Of a stretch of 59,784 nt of DNA, positions 11,888-26,273 are shown piece after piece (within the stretch, counting starts at the first letter, position 1; each line of letters begins with the position of its first letter). This DNA comes from Trichosphaerium sp. ATCC 40318 (taxonomy: Eukaryota > Protista > Tubulinea). The notes under the pieces were generated by a model that was not told the origin of the DNA, searched no databases, and saw only the letters and a list, made by a program, of their open reading frames with translations. The stretch is taken from the NCBI GenBank assembly GCA_038496445.1, contig JALMLS010000273.1:1-59784 (forward strand). The letters run 5' to 3'. A program made the position numbers and the translations under genes.

Positions 11888-12490
11888 TTTGCTTAAAACC
11901 TACACTGGTATTGAGTATTTGCTTAGATATATAGTAAAAGCGGCGATTTAATTTCGTTTGAAGCGTGTCAGAATACGCGTCGTTATAGAAATAAATAAAA
12001 GCCGATTTTTAAGGCGATAGACGCATGGCATTGTCAATTAGAGCGGAATTAAGGCAAATGGAGTTTCTTTCGTTGCTAAAACACCAAAAGAGAGAACCTA
12101 ACTTGTGAGTACCTTTGGTAGATCGTTTACTTGCTTTTAGAGCGATTACTAACAATATAACTGTAAGCGTTTGTAATAGTAGATTAACTATACCTAGTAT
12201 AAAGTACTACGCTCCAGAATATCAAAAACAGTACAAACGTCGCTATGGAGATGTAACCGTTAAACAAAAAAAAGTCATCAAAATTATTGAAAAAAAATTA
12301 GATTTCAACTTGTTAAACGGCTATAGCCTTTTAGCGACCACATCGTACAATTTCCAGATAGCCCCGAGCTTTTAATTAAAAAAAAGCAAAGCTAGGGTTA
12401 CTCCTGTACCACACGTGATTTTCATATGAAAATCTCTACATACTCTAATAGGGTTCACACTGTACTTTTGAATTCATACATAGGCCCAAA

Positions 12491-12612
12491 TGTAAGAGTG
12501 ATTTAGGTAAGGAGAGAGTTCAGGCCGATCCCTGAGTGTATTTATTGTGTACGCTTAAGGCGTAGTAGTACAAGATTAACTTAAGAGACATCCGTCATAT
12601 GTGTATCTTACA
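12491..12612 (-). repeat. 3' LTR (122 bp)
   Basis: Identical to 20859-20980; 7-bp terminal inverted repeat TGTAAGA/TCTTACA. Confidence 0.95.
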
Positions 12613-12615
12613 GAG

Positions 12616-12629
12616 CTCCCTTTCTTCTT
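12616..12629 (-). other. Polypurine tract of the LTR element
   Basis: Minus-strand AAGAAGAAAGGGAG, 3 nt from the 3' LTR. Confidence 0.85.
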
Positions 12630-14103
12630 AGCGGACGTCCCGTCGGCTCATCCAAATCCATCATATCCGTTGTGATAGCTCGGAAACCTGCATAACCGTA
12701 TAACCAGTTCTAGACTGGAGGTAAATTTAGCTTTTATCACTATTGATCACCCGATAGAGCCAATGCCATGTCCAGTGCGAAGGTGTCCTCGAAATGTTCA
12801 ATTATGTTATCTAGCCATTCTCTGAGTTCCTCTTTATCACTTGTTTTGCCCAGGTCCTTGATTAGTCGTTTTTGCGTGTGTCCATCTCTCACATACGGTG
12901 AACCTCGTCCAATCAGGTTCGTGATTGCTTGTTTTATCTTCTTCTTATTCATCTTTGGTGCTATTGCGGCTACATCCTTTAGTAATCCTTTTAATATTTC
13001 TGTTCTGTGTGCTTTGCTTCTCCTTGTTATTTTTCTGTTCTCTTTTGGTATCTCCTTTACTACCCCTTTCTTTAGTTTCTGTGCTATCACTTCCGTTTCC
13101 TCTATGTCTTTCTGTGTTGGCGGCGTGTTTTCCTCAATGTAATCATCGTCTCCAACCATTCGTATATTTTCTGTGTCGTCGAAGTTTTTGAATTGTGGTT
13201 CTTCATCTGGTCTCAGGAATGAATCTATGAATGGTTTTAATCGCTCCACGTTGACCACCTTGCTCATGCGGCTATGTTGTGGTAGCTCCATTAAGCATGT
13301 TGTGGGTCCAGGTCTGCTTAATATCTTGTAGGGTCCCTGCCATTTGCATGTGAACTTTCCCTGTTCTTCTGTACGGTATGGTATGTTGATCCATACCAGT
13401 TGTCCCGGTTTGTAGTCCACGAACCGTCTCTTCTTATTGTAGTATCTGGCTTGGTCTCTCTTTGCTTTCAATATCGCTTTCTTCGCTATCTGGTATGCAT
13501 ATCTTAGCCGGTGTGCTAATACATCAGCCCAGTGTGCCATCCTGTACTTGTCTGGTATCTGTACTTTCTCTTCATTTAGCATATCCGCTGGTATCCTTGG
13601 TTCGCGTCCAAACATCAGTAAGAATGGTGAGTATCCCGTGGAGTGATGTATAGCAGTTCTGTAAGCGTATAATGCGTACGGTATCCAATAGTCCCAGTCA
13701 TTTTGTTGTGCATTCACTAATGACTTTAGGATTTCTACTATTGTGTGGTTGAATCTCTCTGTTTGTCCGTCCGTTTGCGGGTGAAATGCTGTTGTTCTCT
13801 TTGGGTGGATGTATAGCATATTCATAACCCTCGTCAGGAACTTCCCTGTGAAGTCTTTGCCTTGGTCCGTTAGTACTTGTTTGGGTAAGCCATATCGGAA
13901 GCAGAAGTCCTTCACAAAAACAGGAGCCACGTCCGTAGCGTGATGACTGGTCAGAGGGTAAGCGTCCGTCCATTTGGTGAAGTGATCGGTGATCACTAAC
14001 AGGTACTTATACCCCCGTGCTGTTTGTGGTAGTGGTCCGACAATGTCCATTGCCACTACCTGCATTGGTTCCAGTACAGGGAAGTTTACTGCGAACCCAC
14101 CCT

Positions 14104-15140
14104 CAGGGCTGAAACTCAGCTAGGCATTGCCTTAAAAAATGATGCATATTCCTAACATTTGGCATTAGATGGCAAAATCAAGGCATTTGCATTTGGCAAT
14201 GCCCAATAAAATAAGGCATTTTTACAAAAAGGCAATGCCTTCATCAAAAAGGCATTAATACCAGGCATTTTTGGGCATCTTTTGGCATTGCATAAAATCA
14301 GGTAATGCCTTGTATTGCATTTTTTGGCATTGCATAAAATCACGTAATGCCCTGTATTGCAAGTACTTTATGCCTTTATTATGCCTTATTTTTTTAAGCA
14401 ATATATGCCTTGTATTTTAATTCATATATAAGGCATTGCCTATACTATATCATAGGACTGATCACATTAAGGAAGTGGTTTAAGGTAAGTAACAGTCAAA
14501 CAACTTTTACACTTTTTTTTTCACATCACCTACTGACGTTTTATATAGATAGGCACCTAACGCTCTTAGTAATTCATGAAATTAGACGAAACCACCGCCA
14601 AACGAACCGCAGCACTCTATTTCACCTACAACAGTAGTAGGAGTGAACTCCGCGATATTTCCAGGACCGCGGAATTCTAACACTACAAGGTAAGTTTTTT
14701 TTTTTTTTTTTCTACACCATCTCATATTTTCTTTAAGGTTTTTTCAAATGTGGACTTAGGAGTTTTGTGTATTGTATGTGCACTGTATTATAAAATAAAT
14801 AGTTGTGTTATTACCTGAAAATGCCCTGGTTTATTAGGCACTGTAGACTATGATAATGCTTACTTTTTGCCTTCAAAATAAGGCATTGATGCATGAGTTA
14901 TGCCCTAATTTGAAGGGCATAATTCCTAAAAATATGCAGGCAAAACCATTGCAATCTTGTGTACCAGATGCAAGCATTTTTCATCAAATATAAGGCATTT
15001 TTGGAGCAAAAAATAAGGCATTGCCCTGTATTTGCCTTTTTGAATGAGGCAAAAACTAGGCATTTTTGTAAAAAATAAGGCATTATTTGATGAAAATGCC
15101 TAGGCATTGTCCAAAAATGCCTTGTTGAGTTTCAGCCCTG
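14104..15140. mobile_element. Non-autonomous TIR DNA transposon, copy 1 (1037 bp), inserted in the integrase coding region
   Basis: Perfect 15-bp TIR CAGGGCTGAAACTCA (23/25 when extended), 2-bp TSD CT and many AGGCATT/AATGCCT subterminal repeats. Confidence 0.93.
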
Positions 15141-18100
15141 CTTCGGTAATCTTGGAGTCTTCGCCCTCTGACATCTCTTGCAGGACTCACACCATTCTCG
15201 CACGTCAGAATACATATTAGGCCAGTAGAATCTTCGTGTTAATCGCTGGTATGTCTTTATGAATCCAAAGTGTCCTGCGAATGGTGCATCGTGACATAAT
15301 CGCATGATGAAATTTTGCATATTCTGTGGTACGTATATCTGTAACGTATTTGACCCTTCTATTGTTTTGTTCCTTTTGTCTATGTGATACAATATGTGTG
15401 TATCATTGTCGTATCCGAGGCTCTTCACTTTGGTAATAAATATTGATTTCCTAAACCCATGTTTCCGTTTGACCCAGTTGGGTATGTTTCCTTCTGTGAT
15501 GAATTGTATGTACGCTCTTATGATCGGATCTGTTCGTTGGCAGTTATCCCAGTTTATATTTTCCATTGTGTCCAGTCCGTCTTTGAGTTCCTTTGTGTCT
15601 TCCTGCGTCTTCATTCTTAGGGTTGTTTTCTTTGGTTCATTTGTCTTCTCCCCTGTATGATCGTCATCTATTGCCATGTTCATATATACAGTGTTTACTG
15701 TATCGACTAATGGTGGTCTCGTCAGAGCGTCGGCGTCCAAATGCTTTTTTCCTTGTTTGTACTTTAATTTGTAATCGTAACTTTGTAGTTCTAATAACCA
15801 TCGTGCAACCAGTGCTCTTGGGTTTTGTAGGTTCTGTATATATTCTAGTGGCTTGTGATCCGTGTATACCACCAGTGTGAATTCCGTTAACGAAATATAT
15901 CCTGCAAACTCCTTAATGGCTGATATCACTCCCAGCGTTTCCCTCTCTATTGTTGAGTATTTCTGTTGAGCTTTATTGAATGCTTTGCTGTAGTATGCGA
16001 TCACGTGTTCTCTTCTGTTGTGTTTTTGTACCAGAGTTGCGCCCATCGCTACTTGTGAGGCATCTACATGTATTTCGAATGGTATGGTGAAATCTGGGTG
16101 CTTCAATATCGGTGGTGATATAAGCAATTCTCGTAGTTTTTCGAATGCTTTCTGTTGTTTATCGGACCATTCCCATGCAGCGTCTTTGTGTTTCAATTTG
16201 TTTAACGGGCTTGCCCAGTGGGCGTATCTGGGCACAAATCTACGATAGTATCCTGTGATTCCCAAGAAGCGCTCTACTTCGTTGATATCTTTCGGTGCTG
16301 GTGCTTCCTTGATGACTTTGATTATTCTCGGGTTAGTCGCGATGCCATTAGCGGTTACGATGTGTCCTAGGAACTCTACTTCGTCTTTGAAAAGTACTGC
16401 TTTGGATGCTTTTAGCTTGACATTGTGCTCTCTCATCCTTGAGAACATGAGTTTCAGGTGGACCAGGTGCTCTTCGAAGGTGCTGCTGAATACAATAATG
16501 TCATCTACATAGCACAAGCATACTTGCCAGAGTAGTCCAGACAACATTAGGTTCATGTGCCTCTGGAAGGTGGCTTGCGCGTTCTTTAATCCAAAGGGCA
16601 TTCCTAGCCACTCGTATAATCCCCAAGGCGTTGCAAACGCTGTTTTTGATCTATCTTTATCTGCCATTTTAATTTGCCAGTATCCTGATATAGCATCAAA
16701 AAGTGAGAACAGTTTCGCTCTGGATAATGCCTCCAGTAGTTCTGTAATGCGTGGTAGTGGGTGCACATCTTTCTTTGTAACTTTGTTCAGTGCTCTGTAA
16801 TCGATGCAGAATCACCATGTACCATCTTTTTTCCTTACTAGTACTACCGGTGCTGACCATTGTGATTTAGATTCTTGTATCACTCCCATTTTTAACATTC
16901 GTTCTACCTCCTTTTTGACGATCTCACGCTTCTGTGGCGGTAGTGGTCGGTAGGGAATGTGTACTGGTCTGGCGTTTTCATCTGTATCGATGTAGTGCTC
17001 CGTTCCTTTCGCGTTAGCTGGCGTCTCTAGTTCTGACGTGAATACGTCCAAGTTACTAGCCATGAATGTGTATGCTATTTTCTTCTGTTCTTCCGTTATG
17101 TTATTGCCCTCCATTTTGAATGTCTGTTTCGCTTTCATGATATCTGCTTCTGTGACTTTCTCGTTCTCCTTGGTGATCTTGTCCATCTCTTTCCTGTAAT
17201 CGATATCTAGTGATGACACGTCGTCATCTTCTGAGATAACCCGAAATCGAGCAATGTTGCAGTTTTTCTTGATGATCTTTGTTCTGTTGGTTGCATTCAT
17301 CACGTGTACTGGTACCATGTGTTTGTTAACTACTTTGCAGCATGTTCGTGCGAGTTGTATACCCAGTTTGTTGAATATGATATTGTGACTGTCTCCTCCT
17401 TCGACTTCGTGTGCTTCTACTATTCCCTCTCTTTTCGTGACCGGCGTCGATAGCTTTGCCCAGAATTGACACTGTGAGTATTTGGGTATTTTGATCTTGC
17501 CTCCAGTGATAATGAACGCTTCGTCTGGCTTCTGAATATTCTCTCTGATTTTGTTAAGGCCGATCTCATCTTTTAGTTTGTTGGTTATGGTGTCCGTGGT
17601 GAAATCTATCTTTAAACCAAATCCTTTTATCATATTTAATCCTAATAATATGCGGTATCTGAACTTCTTTACCACATAGAATAGCACATTCTGCTTCTGA
17701 CTGCCAATTGTGATAGGTACTGTAGCCGTTCCAATGATAGGCAACGGTCTGTTATTAGCTGCCAGTACTCTCGGTTGCGCTGTATGATGTACCAAATTCC
17801 TCTTGCTGATCCGTTTCATAGTGGCGTAGCTGATGATACTGCATGTTGCACCTGTATCTATTACTGCGTCTATGTTCTCCATCGTGTCTACTGTGACCTT
17901 CGCCATTGTGATATTGTATGAATATTTCTTTCGTGGAAGGCCATCTGCTATAGTGTTCACACTAGCGTCCTGATGTAATCTAGTGTGTTCTACACAATGG
18001 GTATGCCTTTTGCCTTCTGCTGGTTCGATTGTGTTACCGTTCGGCATTTTTGCGTAATCAGCGTCATCATGACTCAGCAGTTGTTTAACTTCATCCTCCA

Positions 18101-19083
18101 CTATGTACTCGTCTCTCTTTGTGAGCTTGTTAGTGCCAAAAGATCCCATAGGGCCTGTAGAAAACGGAGACTTTGCGTAAGACCAGATATGTTTATTAAC
18201 TTCTACATTATTAACATCATCACGACGTCTTGGGCATCTCTCCGCGGTGTGTTCGCGACTCTTGCATATCTGACATGCTTCTCGCCTGCTGTCAGTGTCA
18301 CGTCTTCTGTCTCGTTCATCTCTACGTGGTGTATCGTATCTGCGTCTCTTGGGTTCGTCTCGGTAGCGTCGATCATCATAGTTGTTTCTTTTCCGTTTCT
18401 CGTCACGTGCTCTCCTTTCTCGTGATCTCGATCTTCTATCCCTATCTGCACGCCGCCTATCATATTCGCGTGTTCTGTTGTTCCTAGTGTACGAATCTCG
18501 CCTGTCGTAATAACGTCGGTCGCTATCTCTGGGGCGTGGGAGCGGTTTGATCTGGCGTTCATCTCTTCTATTGGTTGGTCTGCTGGGTACTTGCTTCTTA
18601 GGCGTTGTGATTGTGTTGATCGCGTTTTCCTCCTTCATGATGCTTCTCTTCCTGGCTAGCATCTGCTTGCGTACTTTTTCCTTATCGTGGTAGCTGCGTT
18701 CCGCCTTGGTTGCAATTTTGATGATCTTTTCGTAGTCCATCTTTGTTGAGTCATAGTTGCCATAATGCGCCTTCACTTTCATCCTTAGGTTAGGTAATAA
18801 CCCAGCAAAGAATACACGTGTCTTTTCCTTGACTGATTGTCGCGCCATGCTAGCCCATCTGTCGATGTATGCACGAAATTCTTCCACTGACTGATCGATT
18901 TGTTGTTGCGCTGATTGTAGCTTCTGGTACGCTTCATCTGTGCCACGGATATAATGGAATCTTCTAATGAGTGCCAGTATCGCTTCTGCCGGTTCATTGC
19001 TGTCCAAGTTACTCAGCATCGTGAATGCTTCTTCTTCGGCTGCTCTTGCGAGTAAATATAAATATCCCTTCTTGTTGATGTTG

Positions 19084-20121
19084 CAGGGCTGAAACTCAGC
19101 TAGGCATTGCCTTAAAAAATGATGCATATTCCTAACATTTGGCATTAGATGGCAAAATCAAGGCATTTGCATTTGGCAATGCCCAATAAAATAAGGCATT
19201 TTTACAAAAAGGCAATGCCTTCATCAAAAAGGCATTAATACCAGGCATTTTTGGGCATCTTTTGGCATTGCATAAAATCAGGTAATGCCTTGTATTGCAT
19301 TTTTTGGCATTGCATAAAATCACGTAATGCCCTGTATTGCAAGTACTTTATGCCTTTATTATGCCTTATTTTTTTAAGCAATATATGCCTTGTATTTTAA
19401 TTCATATATAAGGCATTGCCTATACTATATCATAGGACTGATCACATTAAGGAAGTGGTTTAAGGTAAGTAACAGTCAAACAACTTTTACACTTTTTTTT
19501 TCACATCACCTACTGACGTTTTATATAGATAGGCACCTAACGCTCTTAGTAATTCATGAAATTAGACGAAACCACCGCCAAACGAACCGCAGCACTCTAT
19601 TTCACCTACAACAGTAGTAGGAGTGAACTCCGCGATATTTCCAGGACCGCGGAATTCTAACACTACAAGGTAAGTTTTTTTTTTTTTTTTTTCTACACCA
19701 TCTCATATTTTCTTTAAGGTTTTTTCAAATGTGGACTTAGGAGTTTTGTGTATTGTATGTGCACTGTATTATAAAATAAATAGTTGTGTTATTACCTGAA
19801 AATGCCCTGGTTTATTAGGCACTGTAGACTATGATAATGCTTACTTTTTGCCTTCAAAATAAGGCATTGATGCATGAGTTATGCCCTAATTTGAAGGGCA
19901 TAATTCCTAAAAATATGCAGGCAAAACCATTGCAATCTTGTGTACCAGATGCAAGCATTTTTCATCAAATATAAGGCATTTTTGGAGCAAAAAATAAGGC
20001 ATTGCCCTGTATTTGCCTTTTTGAATGAGGCAAAAACTAGGCATTTTTGTAAAAAATAAGGCATTATTTGATGAAAATGCCTAGGCATTGTCCAAAAATG
20101 CCTTGTTGAGTTTCAGCCCTG
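19084..20121. mobile_element. Non-autonomous TIR DNA transposon, copy 2 (1038 bp), inserted in gag
   Basis: Same orientation as copy 1 and, by eye, the same sequence except one extra T in the poly-T run. 2-bp TSD TG. Confidence 0.93.
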
Positions 20122-20842
20122 TGTACGTGTCGGCCGTTTGTCTTATTCTGGTCAAGTACACGTACATAGCTCTGACGGATATGTCGCTGCCAAATTTGTT
20201 CTGTGCTTCTGGTACTTTGCCAGCTTTATTCATCGTGATTGACTTAGACCAATCACTGCCAAATACCAATCCGTTTCAGTCTCTGATGGCGTGTGGTAGG
20301 AACTGTAATACGCACTTGTGTTCTTCTTTTGTGCATTCCATTTTGTTGAGTCTCTCTACCCTATCATCTGCTTTGTACGAGGATATACTGGATCGACTAT
20401 CAGGCGTCTCGTGTACTTCCTTGCGCACGTCTTCCATATTGCGAAAATCGTCATCATCTTCGTCGTCGTCACCCAGACTGACTGGACTGTTGTATGGCTT
20501 GGGTGCTGCGTCTGCGTCTTTGGTGTCAGTGTTGCTTGTCCTTCTCCTCTTGGTGGTATTTCCCTTTGTAGCATCGCCAGTTCGCTTGCGGATCTTCTTG
20601 GGCGTGCTGGTGACCTTTGGTACATTTGTGAATCCCTTGGCTGGCGTCGATCCTTTGCCACGTGTGGGACCAGGTTTGTTCTCGCTTTCTTCATCGGAGC
20701 TGAAATTCACACGTAGCTCTTCCCCCTCTTTCTCGCTAGATTTGCCTTTCTGCTCGTTCTCCAATCCCGTACCTGCGTCAATATCGGCGTCAGCCGCGTT
20801 ATCCTTAATGGTTTCATCATTGTCGCCAGCAGTGCTCATATG

Positions 20843-20856
20843 TGCTCGTGTCGCCA
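20843..20856 (-). other. Primer-binding site (possibly tRNA-Ser)
   Basis: TGGCGACACGAGCA lies 2 nt from the 5' LTR and is complementary to a tRNA 3' end ...TGC-TCGTGTC-G-CCA. The G discriminator fits Ser; the tRNA identity is an inference. Confidence 0.7.
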
Positions 20857-20858
20857 AA

Positions 20859-20980
20859 TGTAAGAGTGATTTAGGTAAGGAGAGAGTTCAGGCCGATCCC
20901 TGAGTGTATTTATTGTGTACGCTTAAGGCGTAGTAGTACAAGATTAACTTAAGAGACATCCGTCATATGTGTATCTTACA
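20859..20980 (-). repeat. 5' LTR (122 bp)
   Basis: Identical to 12491-12612; adjacent to the PBS. Confidence 0.95.
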
Positions 20981-21267
20981 CAAAAAGCCATAATCAAGCA
21001 AGTTTAGCAAGATAAAAAAAAGAGATTTTGCAAATCCGGCCCATCGAGTCGTCATCAAAAAAGTCAACTTTTGTAAACCCAAAAATTGTGGATTTCACAA
21101 TAAAGAATACGTAACTCCCCAATGTCGCAACAACGCCGTGGCTTTTCCAAGTATTATGACAAACGCCCAAAGGATCGCGTGTTGAAATGGTCAAACAGAG
21201 AATCCATACAGTATGTACTTCATAACATCTGCAATACTGGCAACTAATATTTCTTTGGGCTCCGATT

Positions 21268-22452
21268 TTGACAGCAGCATTGAAGCCTTACGGATTTACC
21301 TATGTTGACTATCCCGTGTTAGACGTTTGGACTAAACTTAAAAAACAACGTAACGTTATTGGTATTGGAAAAGCCAAGACACCAATGGCATTTTTCACCT
21401 TCAAGTGGGATAATAAGATTTTTGAAAACTTGTTATTCACAAGCACATATGAACAACATCACACTGACCTAAAAAATGGGATCACTACCCATATGACGAA
21501 CTTCTCTGGTATAGTGATATGGCATGGGATTATTGGAATACAGAATATTCGCACATTGTGGAGCACAGGTGAAGCACAAATTTTATTTACTGGGAAAACA
21601 GGTTTGTTGCAACTTAATCACTACTTCAACATCTCTGCCAACATGAAATTTGATGCTAACATGGTACATTCATTTCTAGTGATTGTCTTTAAGCGCCACA
21701 TGGTACCAGGTTATTTCACTTGTGCTGATGAAATCTGTATTCCATCATAATATTTCAATTGCCATATAAAAACTCACAACACTAAGAAACCATACGCATG
21801 GGCCATAGAATTGAAGTGTCTCGATGATTCGAACTAGGTATCTGATTGACTTTATCAATACTTTGATATAGCCTCATCTCACACCAAATGAATCCTTCTT
21901 TCATGTGCAAAATGGTCGAAAACAATTGGAAGGTGCCATTTTTTTACATGTGACTCTAATTTTTGTTCAGCCATGGATCTCAACAAGCCGGGGGAATTTG
22001 ACTTAGACGCTACTTCATCATGTAATACCAACCACTGTCAGTGGCCTTGCAGCAATCAATTGCAAAAAAAGTGCCTGTGGGATACACAAGATTGGCACCA
22101 TTGGACAAAACTGTTGCTGTTGCAACAAATAGCAATGAAATTGTAAAGTTGGCCACCACTCTCTACTGTGTGCATGATGACAAAAGTTCATTTGACAGTA
22201 GCAATAAAAGATATGTTCAAAAATAAAAATGATGACACCAAGGGAAATAGTGATCAATTTGGCCAGCTGGTCAAGTCCTATTGTACAGATAGGCGGTTCA
22301 AAAAATGGAACATGACACTTCTTGTTGGTTGGTTTTACTACACCCTCACAACTGCTTTTATTCTGTATAAGTGTCAAGACGGAACCCTTACTCCCAAAGG
22401 TTTTTTACAAGAAATTGCAACGGAATTGCTTCTCACAGGGACAGGAAAATAA
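21268..22452 (+). pseudogene. Degenerate piggyBac-family transposase
   Basis: TPMAFFTFKWD, FSGIVIWHG, PGYFTCADE (D1), KKPYAW, FFTCDSNF (D2) and KGNSDQFGQLVKSYCTDRRFKKW (D3 region). Several stops and frameshifts. Confidence 0.82.
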
Positions 22453-25004: not shown

Positions 25005-26273
25005 ATGGACTCAAACAGCGCATTCTTTAATGAGATTCCCATTGAGGTCATTGTTCTTATCCTACAGTTTGTTCCCGTGTTATCTATGCCTTTAGTTGTA
25101 CGTACATCACTTTTATTATCCAATACCGCCAAACAGCACTTGGGATACACAAAAAGGGGAACCATTGTTCTCAAGACGAAAAAAAAGCTGAAAAAGCTTT
25201 TCAAGGAAGCTCCGTATCTGATAAAAAGAAACACAATTTCTATTCATTTCAAAATAAGAAAAAAATCAGATTTAGAGTACCTTCAAGGTGCTTATGCAAT
25301 AGAACTGCATAAGGCAGTAAACAGCAATATCGATTTCACAAACCTTAAGGTCATTGATAGTATAAACTTCACTTGTTTCAGTAGAGTGACTGATGATCAT
25401 CTTAAACAACTTGCTGGGATACATAAAATAAGATGTCGTAGATCACAAGTCACAGATGATGGGATTAAAGCATTATCTGGTATTCACACTATTGATCTAG
25501 CTTGGACAACAGTTACAGATGATGGCGTGAAAGCCTTGGCTGGTGTTCATACAATTGATTTATGTTGTTGTCGAGGTCTTAAGAATGAAGGTATCAAGGC
25601 TTTAGCTGGAGTTCACGAAATAAATTTAGAGGACACAAGCGTAGCAGATGAAGGTGTTAAAGCCCTGGCTGGTGTTCATACAATCGATCTTTCAACAACA
25701 AAAGTTACAGATGATGGTGTGAAAGCCTTGGCTGGTGTTCATACAATTTCTTTGTGTTGTTGTCAGATAACAGATGAAGGTGTTAGAGCATTAGTTGGTG
25801 TTCACAAAATAGAGTTACGTAGCTGCTCAGGTATAACTGATGAAGGTGTGAAAGTGCTAGCTGGTGTTCATACAATTGATCTTTTGAACACAAGCATTAC
25901 AGATGAAGGTGTAAAAGCCTTGGCTGGTGTTCACACCATCGATCTTTCAAGAACAAAAGTTACAGATGAAGGTTTGAAAGCCTTGGCTGGTGTTCATACA
26001 ATCAGTTTAAGCCATTGTCAATACATTACAGATGACGGCATTAAGGTTTTAGCAGGTGTTCATGGAATAAGGTTAGGGAAGTGTCCAGGTATAACAGATG
26101 AAGGTATTAAAGCTTTAGCTGGTGTTCATACAATTGATTTACGTTTTAATCAGCAAATTACAGATGAAGGTATCGCAGCTTTGGCTGGTGCTCATACAAT
26201 TGATTTACGCTTTTGTTACCAACTTAGACCAAAGAGAATCAAGGCTCTTTATGGGAGTAAATTGATTGTTTAA
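25005..26273 (+). CDS. Intronless F-box-like + LRR protein
   Basis: N-terminal FNEIPIEVIVLILQF followed by about 13 tandem 21-22-aa repeats of the form ITDEGVKALAGVHTIDL. Confidence 0.88.
   Translation: MDSNSAFFNEIPIEVIVLILQFVPVLSMPLVVRTSLLLSNTAKQHLGYTKRGTIVLKTKKKLKKLFKEAPYLIKRNTISIHFKIRKKSDLEYLQGAYAIELHKAVNSNIDFTNLKVIDSINFTCFSRVTDDHLKQLAGIHKIRCRRSQVTDDGIKALSGIHTIDLAWTTVTDDGVKALAGVHTIDLCCCRGLKNEGIKALAGVHEINLEDTSVADEGVKALAGVHTIDLSTTKVTDDGVKALAGVHTISLCCCQITDEGVRALVGVHKIELRSCSGITDEGVKVLAGVHTIDLLNTSITDEGVKALAGVHTIDLSRTKVTDEGLKALAGVHTISLSHCQYITDDGIKVLAGVHGIRLGKCPGITDEGIKALAGVHTIDLRFNQQITDEGIAALAGAHTIDLRFCYQLRPKRIKALYGSKLIV

Follow-up and report, generated by a model that had tools for sequence, protein, structure and literature searches.

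The window analysed here, the whole of contig 255 (JALMLS010000273.1, 59,784 nt) in the 70.3-Mb, 642-contig genome assembly of Trichosphaerium sp. ATCC 40318, contains a Ty3/Gypsy long terminal repeat (LTR) retrotransposon that was struck twice by one and the same DNA transposon: a gene-less element of 1.04 kb that ends in CAG and duplicates two bases of any sequence on insertion. The two copies, named A and B, are each other's closest relatives. Taken as a whole, the data favour, with fair though far from complete confidence, a reading in which this single-copy Gypsy was hit twice, the second copy would be a short-range re-insertion with the donor kept, and the retroelement host fits a pattern seen across the transposon family. 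The two copies are as follows.

14104-15140, plus strand: copy A, a non-autonomous DNA transposon of 1037 bp, with terminal inverted repeats (TIRs) at 14104-14128 and 15116-15140
19084-20121, plus strand: copy B, the same transposon as copy A, 1038 bp, with an extra T in a poly-T run

Aligned together with their flanks, copies A and B agree letter for letter from CAGGG... to ...CCCTG, except for the length of the poly-T run (17 versus 18 T). Both stand on the plus strand in the same orientation, ~5 kb apart, and their 25-nt TIR arms are 92% complementary. Copy A is flanked by a CT target-site duplication (TSD; 14102-14103 and 15141-15142) and copy B by TG (19082-19083 and 20122-20123). Because each copy has its own 2-bp duplication, A and B are two separate true insertion events. 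The reading phase of the Gypsy element is kept across both inserts: the differences between the ends of its open reading frames (ORFs), 15132-12740-1039 and 20276-16812-1040, are each divisible by 3, the lengths of the open stretches with the inserts left out agree with this coordinate arithmetic, and a single frame is obtained only if the TSD is 2 bp long. A terminus search of the whole window returned no family terminus beyond those of A and B. The preliminary description of this DNA, which reported two copies differing by one T in the same orientation, a private 2-bp TSD for each (CT, TG), a gag-pol frame restored on their removal and no additional copy elsewhere in the window, is thus borne out on these four points.

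The element belongs to a family of some size. Genome-wide searches, proposed in the same description and yielding copy counts that are lower bounds, found ~100 termini, corresponding to ~50 copies with 93-100% identity, of which ~45 are independent; identical or mirrored flanks mark five copies as assembly duplicates. The transposon (1037 bp, 35% G+C) contains no gene, its longest ORF being 75 amino acids long, and no Rfam match. The motif GGCATT occurs 22 times, only in the first ~335 and last ~320 bases, at a density 45 times that of the rest of the window; this layout is that of transposase-binding subterminal arrays, and by analogy the motifs are putative binding sites. With TIRs on ~100 termini, a TSD of fixed length backed by empty sites, numerous copies whose flanks are unrelated and no gene for a transposase, the element is assigned on its sequence to the non-autonomous cut-and-paste DNA transposons, and resembles a miniature inverted-repeat transposable element (MITE). 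Pairing of termini genome-wide revealed no longer or coding version with the same ends in the assembly, and loosening the end pattern to 3 mismatches brought up no new element. Termini 2-14 kb apart on contigs C58, C94, C361, C469 and C365 were considered as autonomous copies, but each of these pairs turned out to be the 1-kb element split by later inserts; the candidate on C99 (L036) holds small nested repeats only and no ORF. The 25-nt end had no match in the metagenome contigs scanned. Since no coding copy with these ends is found in the assembly, the transposase would have to be supplied from elsewhere, in trans.

Reading the junctions at 25 sites gave the following TSDs.

18 of the 25 sites: perfect 2-bp TSD
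3 of the 25 sites: 3-bp TSD
3 of the 25 sites: 2-bp TSD with one mismatch
1 of the 25 sites: no TSD

A perfect 2-bp repeat is expected by chance in 1 case in 16. The second base of the TSD is A or T in 21 of the 25 sites, and there is no TA rule: TA accounts for 2 of the 18 perfect duplications, while TT, AA, CT, CA, GT and TG occur too. Empty sites provide a direct comparison, as the copies at L008 and L017 are inserted in another 1-kb element that is uninterrupted in L003, and the overlap is exactly 2 bp in both cases. The 2-bp duplication is therefore the rule of the family. To note, the copy lacking a TSD (L010, contig C15) has a right flank that is that of a C176 copy (L014) shifted by 184 bp, with 99.85% identity, and the left flanks differ; either both are inserted in the same repeat or a deletion or rearrangement took place beside the element.

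The relationship between A and B was examined among 31 independent copies, that is 465 pairs, which diverge by 2% on average. A and B show zero substitutions and form the closest of these pairs. They have in common one substitution that is present in no other copy and two more found only in the C366 copy. The remaining zero-distance pairs all have identical flanks and are assembly duplicates; a C409 pair, considered as a second sister pair, is an inverted duplication with mirrored flanks. The probability that the closest pair falls by chance among the 5 same-contig pairs is 0.011, and no unsampled copy is as near to A or B, as judged by score. On these substitutions, A and B are identified as sister copies. 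Because they are the closest pair, carry a private substitution and lie on the same contig, the second insertion is best read as a short-range re-insertion, in agreement with the local hopping proposed earlier: one sister would have re-inserted ~5 kb from the other with the donor retained, either through repair from the sister chromatid or through transposition after replication of the donor. Such local re-insertion is well known from Ac/Ds, P elements and Sleeping Beauty.

Several points weigh against this proposal. A donor identical to both might once have been present at another locus and then excised, or it might sit in unassembled DNA. The comparison covers ~15 copies by score alone, and the sister status depends on one private substitution. 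The remaining same-contig pairs, C431a/b and those among the three C176 copies, do not consist of sisters, so clustering in this family usually comes about without local hopping. Gene conversion between direct repeats 5 kb apart would likewise yield identity. Finally, the LTRs of the host are 100% identical, but with only 122 nt they date it weakly.

The host is recognised from its sequence features as a structurally complete Ty3/Gypsy LTR retrotransposon on the minus strand, with TG...CA LTRs, a TSD, a primer-binding site (PBS), a polypurine tract and the order protease, reverse transcriptase (RT), RNase H, integrase. Its parts are given below.

12487-12490, minus strand: TSD of the Gypsy element, TTTG on the minus strand, repeated at 20981-20984
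12491-12612, minus strand: 3' LTR, 122 nt, TG...CA ends, 100% identical to the 5' LTR
12616-12629, minus strand: polypurine tract immediately upstream of the 3' LTR, read from the alignment
12740-14103, minus strand: C-terminal part of pol, with the integrase catalytic core (rve) and an SH3-like domain, stop TAG
15143-16811, minus strand: pol, with the remainder of the RT, RNase H and the integrase H2C2 zinc finger
16812-16814, minus strand: in-frame TGA within the RT domain
16815-19083, minus strand: C-terminal part of gag, aspartic protease (~17625-17897) and start of the RT
20124-20857, minus strand: upstream frame, presumed N-terminal part of gag, without Pfam match and interrupted by an in-frame TGA at 20276-20278
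20841-20858, minus strand: PBS-like sequence of tRNA type (TT then TGGCGAC...) adjoining the 5' LTR, read from the alignment
20859-20980, minus strand: 5' LTR, 122 nt

The domains follow each other in the order protease, RT, RNase H, integrase zinc finger, integrase core and SH3. Copy B sits in the gag part and copy A between the integrase zinc finger and the catalytic core. The earlier placement of both inserts inside the Gypsy gag-pol is therefore correct, but they are not its only breaks, as two in-frame TGA codons interrupt it too. Likewise, the outer TIRs do flank the Gypsy coding part, whereas the inner limit once set at the RNase H boundary has to be moved, copy A breaking the integrase itself. 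The two internal stops are both TGA and the terminal stop is TAG, in an element whose LTRs are identical. A change of genetic code is unlikely as their cause, because most other RT loci of the genome have no internal stops.

The 3.9-kb Gypsy segment lying between the two copies has no match in the genome above 81% identity, and the relatives fetched, the best of them 81% identical, are without insert. The host Gypsy family is thus single-copy in this genome. No other insertion site of the transposon family lies in it. Because the family is single-copy, a targeting of this Gypsy family in particular, as had been envisaged, is not supported.

An affinity for retrotransposons at large, by contrast, has statistical support across the transposon family. 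The immediate context was classified for 29 independent sites, of which 11 interrupt retroelement reading frames, or 14 if three probable ones are included (~40%). LINE stands for long interspersed nuclear element in the list that follows.

5 sites: Gypsy pol interrupted (A, B, L006, L011, L019)
5 sites: LINE endonuclease or RT frames interrupted (L005, L009, L012, L022, L029)
1 site: gag-like ORF interrupted (L003)
3 sites: probable retroelement sites (L018, L028 and L008, the last through a MITE nested in a Gypsy)
2 sites: insertion in another MITE
2 sites: MORN-repeat ORFs interrupted (L043:577-1608 on C76; right flank of L030 on C292)

Because two copies break MORN-repeat frames, the family is not confined to mobile elements. 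A retroelement ORF or a repeat lies at most 1.5 kb away at 23-24 of 26 sites, and nearly all copies are in repeat-dense DNA. Retroelements are estimated at ~2% of the genome (~205 RT loci of 6.5 kb), a lower bound derived from RT hits and not from annotation. Against this share, the excess in retroelement frames is ~20-fold (P ~3e-12); P stays at or below 1e-7 with a share three times higher, and the excess would still be ~4-fold if the share were 10%. Contigs shorter than 60 kb hold ~56% of the copies and ~55% of the RT loci in an estimated ~14% of the genome. The excess is seen in these contigs (7 of 17 versus 7.7%, P = 1.6e-4) as in the large ones (4 of 12 versus 1%, P = 5e-6). As a control for proximity, loci at most 2.5 kb from an RT hit were counted by cross-tabulating positions by hand.

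12 of 50: copies of the studied family within 2.5 kb of an RT hit
10 of 60: copies of MITE-X, a second short family with the same end type and a 2-bp TSD
0 of 37: pogo, Harbinger and Tc1 transposase loci

The studied family differs from the transposase loci by Fisher's test (P = 7e-4), these loci being an imperfect control as they are autonomous elements and not MITEs. They were used in place of a TTAA-flanked element, which was considered as an unrelated MITE and has only 1-2 copies. Furthermore, retroelement-nested copies are less diverged than the others (median 0.58% versus 1.06%, one-sided P = 0.026), which is not as expected from a slow purging of copies at other sites. Flanking DNA has the G+C content of the genome at large (38%), and the sites read show neither a target motif nor a GC bias nor a hot spot within the hosts. 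The insertions fall at differing positions in a number of unrelated LINE and Gypsy families, with no target family, site or motif in common. The excess inside retroelements is real and specific to this transposon group; the affinity for retrotransposons in general, as a wider form of the idea in the preliminary description, is statistically supported (11-14 of 29 sites against a share of ~2%, and none of the 37 transposase loci of other superfamilies). The data favour a bias of the group toward retroelement-rich DNA, the cause of which may be an integration preference or an immediate loss of copies elsewhere, with survival in harmless sites. More speculatively, and with considerable doubt, the transposase of the CAG-ended elements with a 2-bp TSD could direct integration into retroelement bodies or chromatin, disabling LINE and Gypsy copies and sparing host genes.

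Such a bias provides another explanation of the double hit, in which targeting and not proximity would be at work: a transposase preferring retroelements would have brought A and B independently into the same Gypsy, from a recently active donor since excised. The excess of sites within retroelement ORFs, present in small and large contigs alike, speaks for it, as do the proximity of MITE-X to RT loci, the low divergence of retroelement-nested copies and a LINE on C431 that has two non-sister copies in or beside itself. Yet with ~205 retroelements available as targets, two sisters would meet in a single one in about 1 case in 200 unless distance matters; neither a target motif nor a GC bias nor a hot spot was seen, and the enrichment itself is measured with autonomous control loci and a lower-bound retroelement share. 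We hold this explanation to be unlikely, if worth keeping in mind. Gene conversion having homogenised two older independent insertions in the Gypsy element would account for the identity of two direct repeats 5 kb apart over 1 kb, save for a homopolymer. However, the identical LTRs and long open frames of the host make both insertions young regardless, A and B are only 0.48% from the family consensus, and the non-sister pairs at similar spacing on C431 and C176 have not been homogenised, which renders this scenario quite improbable.

Two further possibilities deserve still less credence. A single insertion could have been placed twice through repeat mis-assembly: redundant or palindromic small contigs are present in this assembly (C409, C460, C517, C618 = C431, C510 = C269), and a homopolymer length, the sole difference between A and B, is a typical long-read error. 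A misplaced repeat would nevertheless not give four junctions that are all different, a separate TSD for each copy and a host frame in phase, and an artefact is accordingly very improbable. The last possibility, that a composite transposon moves as a 6-kb block or that the inserts spread with the Gypsy via reverse transcription, can be given next to no weight. The outer ends are correctly oriented to act as one element, but the outer flanks differ (CT versus TG) and the bracketed 3.9-kb segment has no second copy anywhere in the genome, which tells against the composite unit suggested at first. As to hitch-hiking, also suggested, no two hosts carry an insert at the same position: the retroelement insertions of the family each occupy a different position with different flanks. 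Short-range re-insertion of one sister near the other, with its donor retained, is the reading kept here.

The double hit is in itself ordinary, amounting to nesting and a probable short-range re-insertion. The lead lies in the pattern to which it belongs: in a gene-dense 70-Mb genome, one DNA transposon group is found ~20 times over expectation in retroelement coding regions, and three other superfamilies are not. If the pattern reflects an integration bias, this would be a cut-and-paste transposon that uses other mobile elements as safe landing sites; if its transposase is directed to retroelements, a lineage of DNA transposons that seeks a safe haven in retroelements.

The TSD and subterminal arrays of the element fit the CACTA/Mirage/Chapaev (CMC) group, its CAG ends excepted. 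As in CMC elements, its TSD is of 2 bp, occasionally 3 bp, and of any sequence, both subterminal regions harbor arrays of a short motif (the 22 GGCATT), and mobilisation in trans is predicted. The 2-3-bp TSD and motif arrays typical of CMC are both present, whereas the CAC(TA) termini are lacking: the ends read CAGGGCTG, starting CAGGG and not CACTA or CAC. As to the CMC-type DDE transposase expected of an autonomous relative, no copy with the same ends carries a gene, and the ORFs read in a 13.3-kb CAG-ended element on C365 are without Pfam or PDB match. ISL2EU elements were considered for their 2-bp TSD and set aside, as their ends start with GG and they are known only from animals (PMC4482050). 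MITEs of the Tc1/mariner/pogo type (Stowaway, mimp, Tigger-derived) resemble the element by a 2-bp TSD and ends starting with CAG. Transposase loci of pogo type number ~20 in the genome, and several of them contain an open frame of ~610 amino acids. The absence of a TA target rule (2 of 18 perfect TSDs) speaks against membership in this superfamily, and three sites moreover have a 3-bp TSD. Similarly, hAT elements of the Ac/Ds type share CAGGG-type ends and subterminal motif arrays, but their TSD is 8 bp long compared to 2 bp here, as established by the empty-site comparison and the host frame, and hAT membership was rejected on this ground. Re-insertion near the donor is well documented for Ac/Ds.

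In the repeat clusters of Dictyostelium and with Tp1 of Physarum, mobile elements are found mostly within other mobile elements, mainly as retroelements inserted into their own kind. The clustering described here is alike in that 23-24 of 26 sites are near a retroelement ORF or repeat, and unlike in that a DNA transposon is found in LINE and Gypsy coding regions. McGurk and Barbash (2018; PMC5932611) described tandem dimers at a single preferred site, arising by repeated insertion into a small target during an activity burst. Those double insertions likewise bring the same element repeatedly into one small target, whereas the sites in the present Gypsy are 5 kb apart and have no common motif.

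Several other transposons were met beside or within copies of the studied family. MITE-X is gene-less, ~1.03 kb long, with ends CAGTAGTAAAAT... and CAGTGGTAAAAT..., a 2-bp TSD and ~63 copies; it is located at L035:1806-2836 (C361) and also occurs in L003, L008, L017, L028, L032 and L051. MITE-X and the studied family are nested in each other, in both directions. MITE-W (~1.06 kb, CAGGTCTAAAAA ends, AA TSD) has inserted into one copy of the studied family at L033:1811-2868 (C58) and is also found at L009, L011, L032, L038, L039 and L044. With MITE-W existing beside the others, the CAG-ended 2-bp group comprises several short families. The 13.3-kb element of C365 is a giant by comparison: extending from L031:1314 to L045:4594, from CAGGGCTAAAAAT... 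to ...CCCCTG, with a TT TSD, it interrupts one copy of the 1-kb family at position 752/753, its ends being CAGGGCT... and ...CCCCTG. It contains many ORFs of 100-180 amino acids on one strand; Pfam searches with 20 of them and three PDB sequence searches gave no match. It was rejected as the direct parent of the 1-kb family, as its subterminal sequence differs. The TTAA-flanked element mentioned above (1.1 kb, GGGGG...CCCCC ends) is inserted in yet another copy of the 1-kb family, at L034:1443-2556 (C94).

Small contigs that are palindromic or near-exact duplicates, comprising C441, C452 and C509 in addition to those listed above (C409, C460, C517, C618 = C431, C510 = C269), stem either from mis-assembly or from recent inverted duplication and lead to inflated copy counts. 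Within the window, a weak match to a piggyBac-type transposase (DDE_Tnp_1_7, E = 9e-4) is located at 21268-21750 on the plus strand, 290 bp from the Gypsy 5' LTR; Pfam analysis of the adjacent ORFs brought no support for it. A leucine-rich-repeat (LRR_6) ORF contains a tandem repeat with a period of 192 nt, at 25323-26000. Since F-box, tectonin, EGF and MORN-repeat ORFs occur in the window as well, it is not pure repeat DNA.

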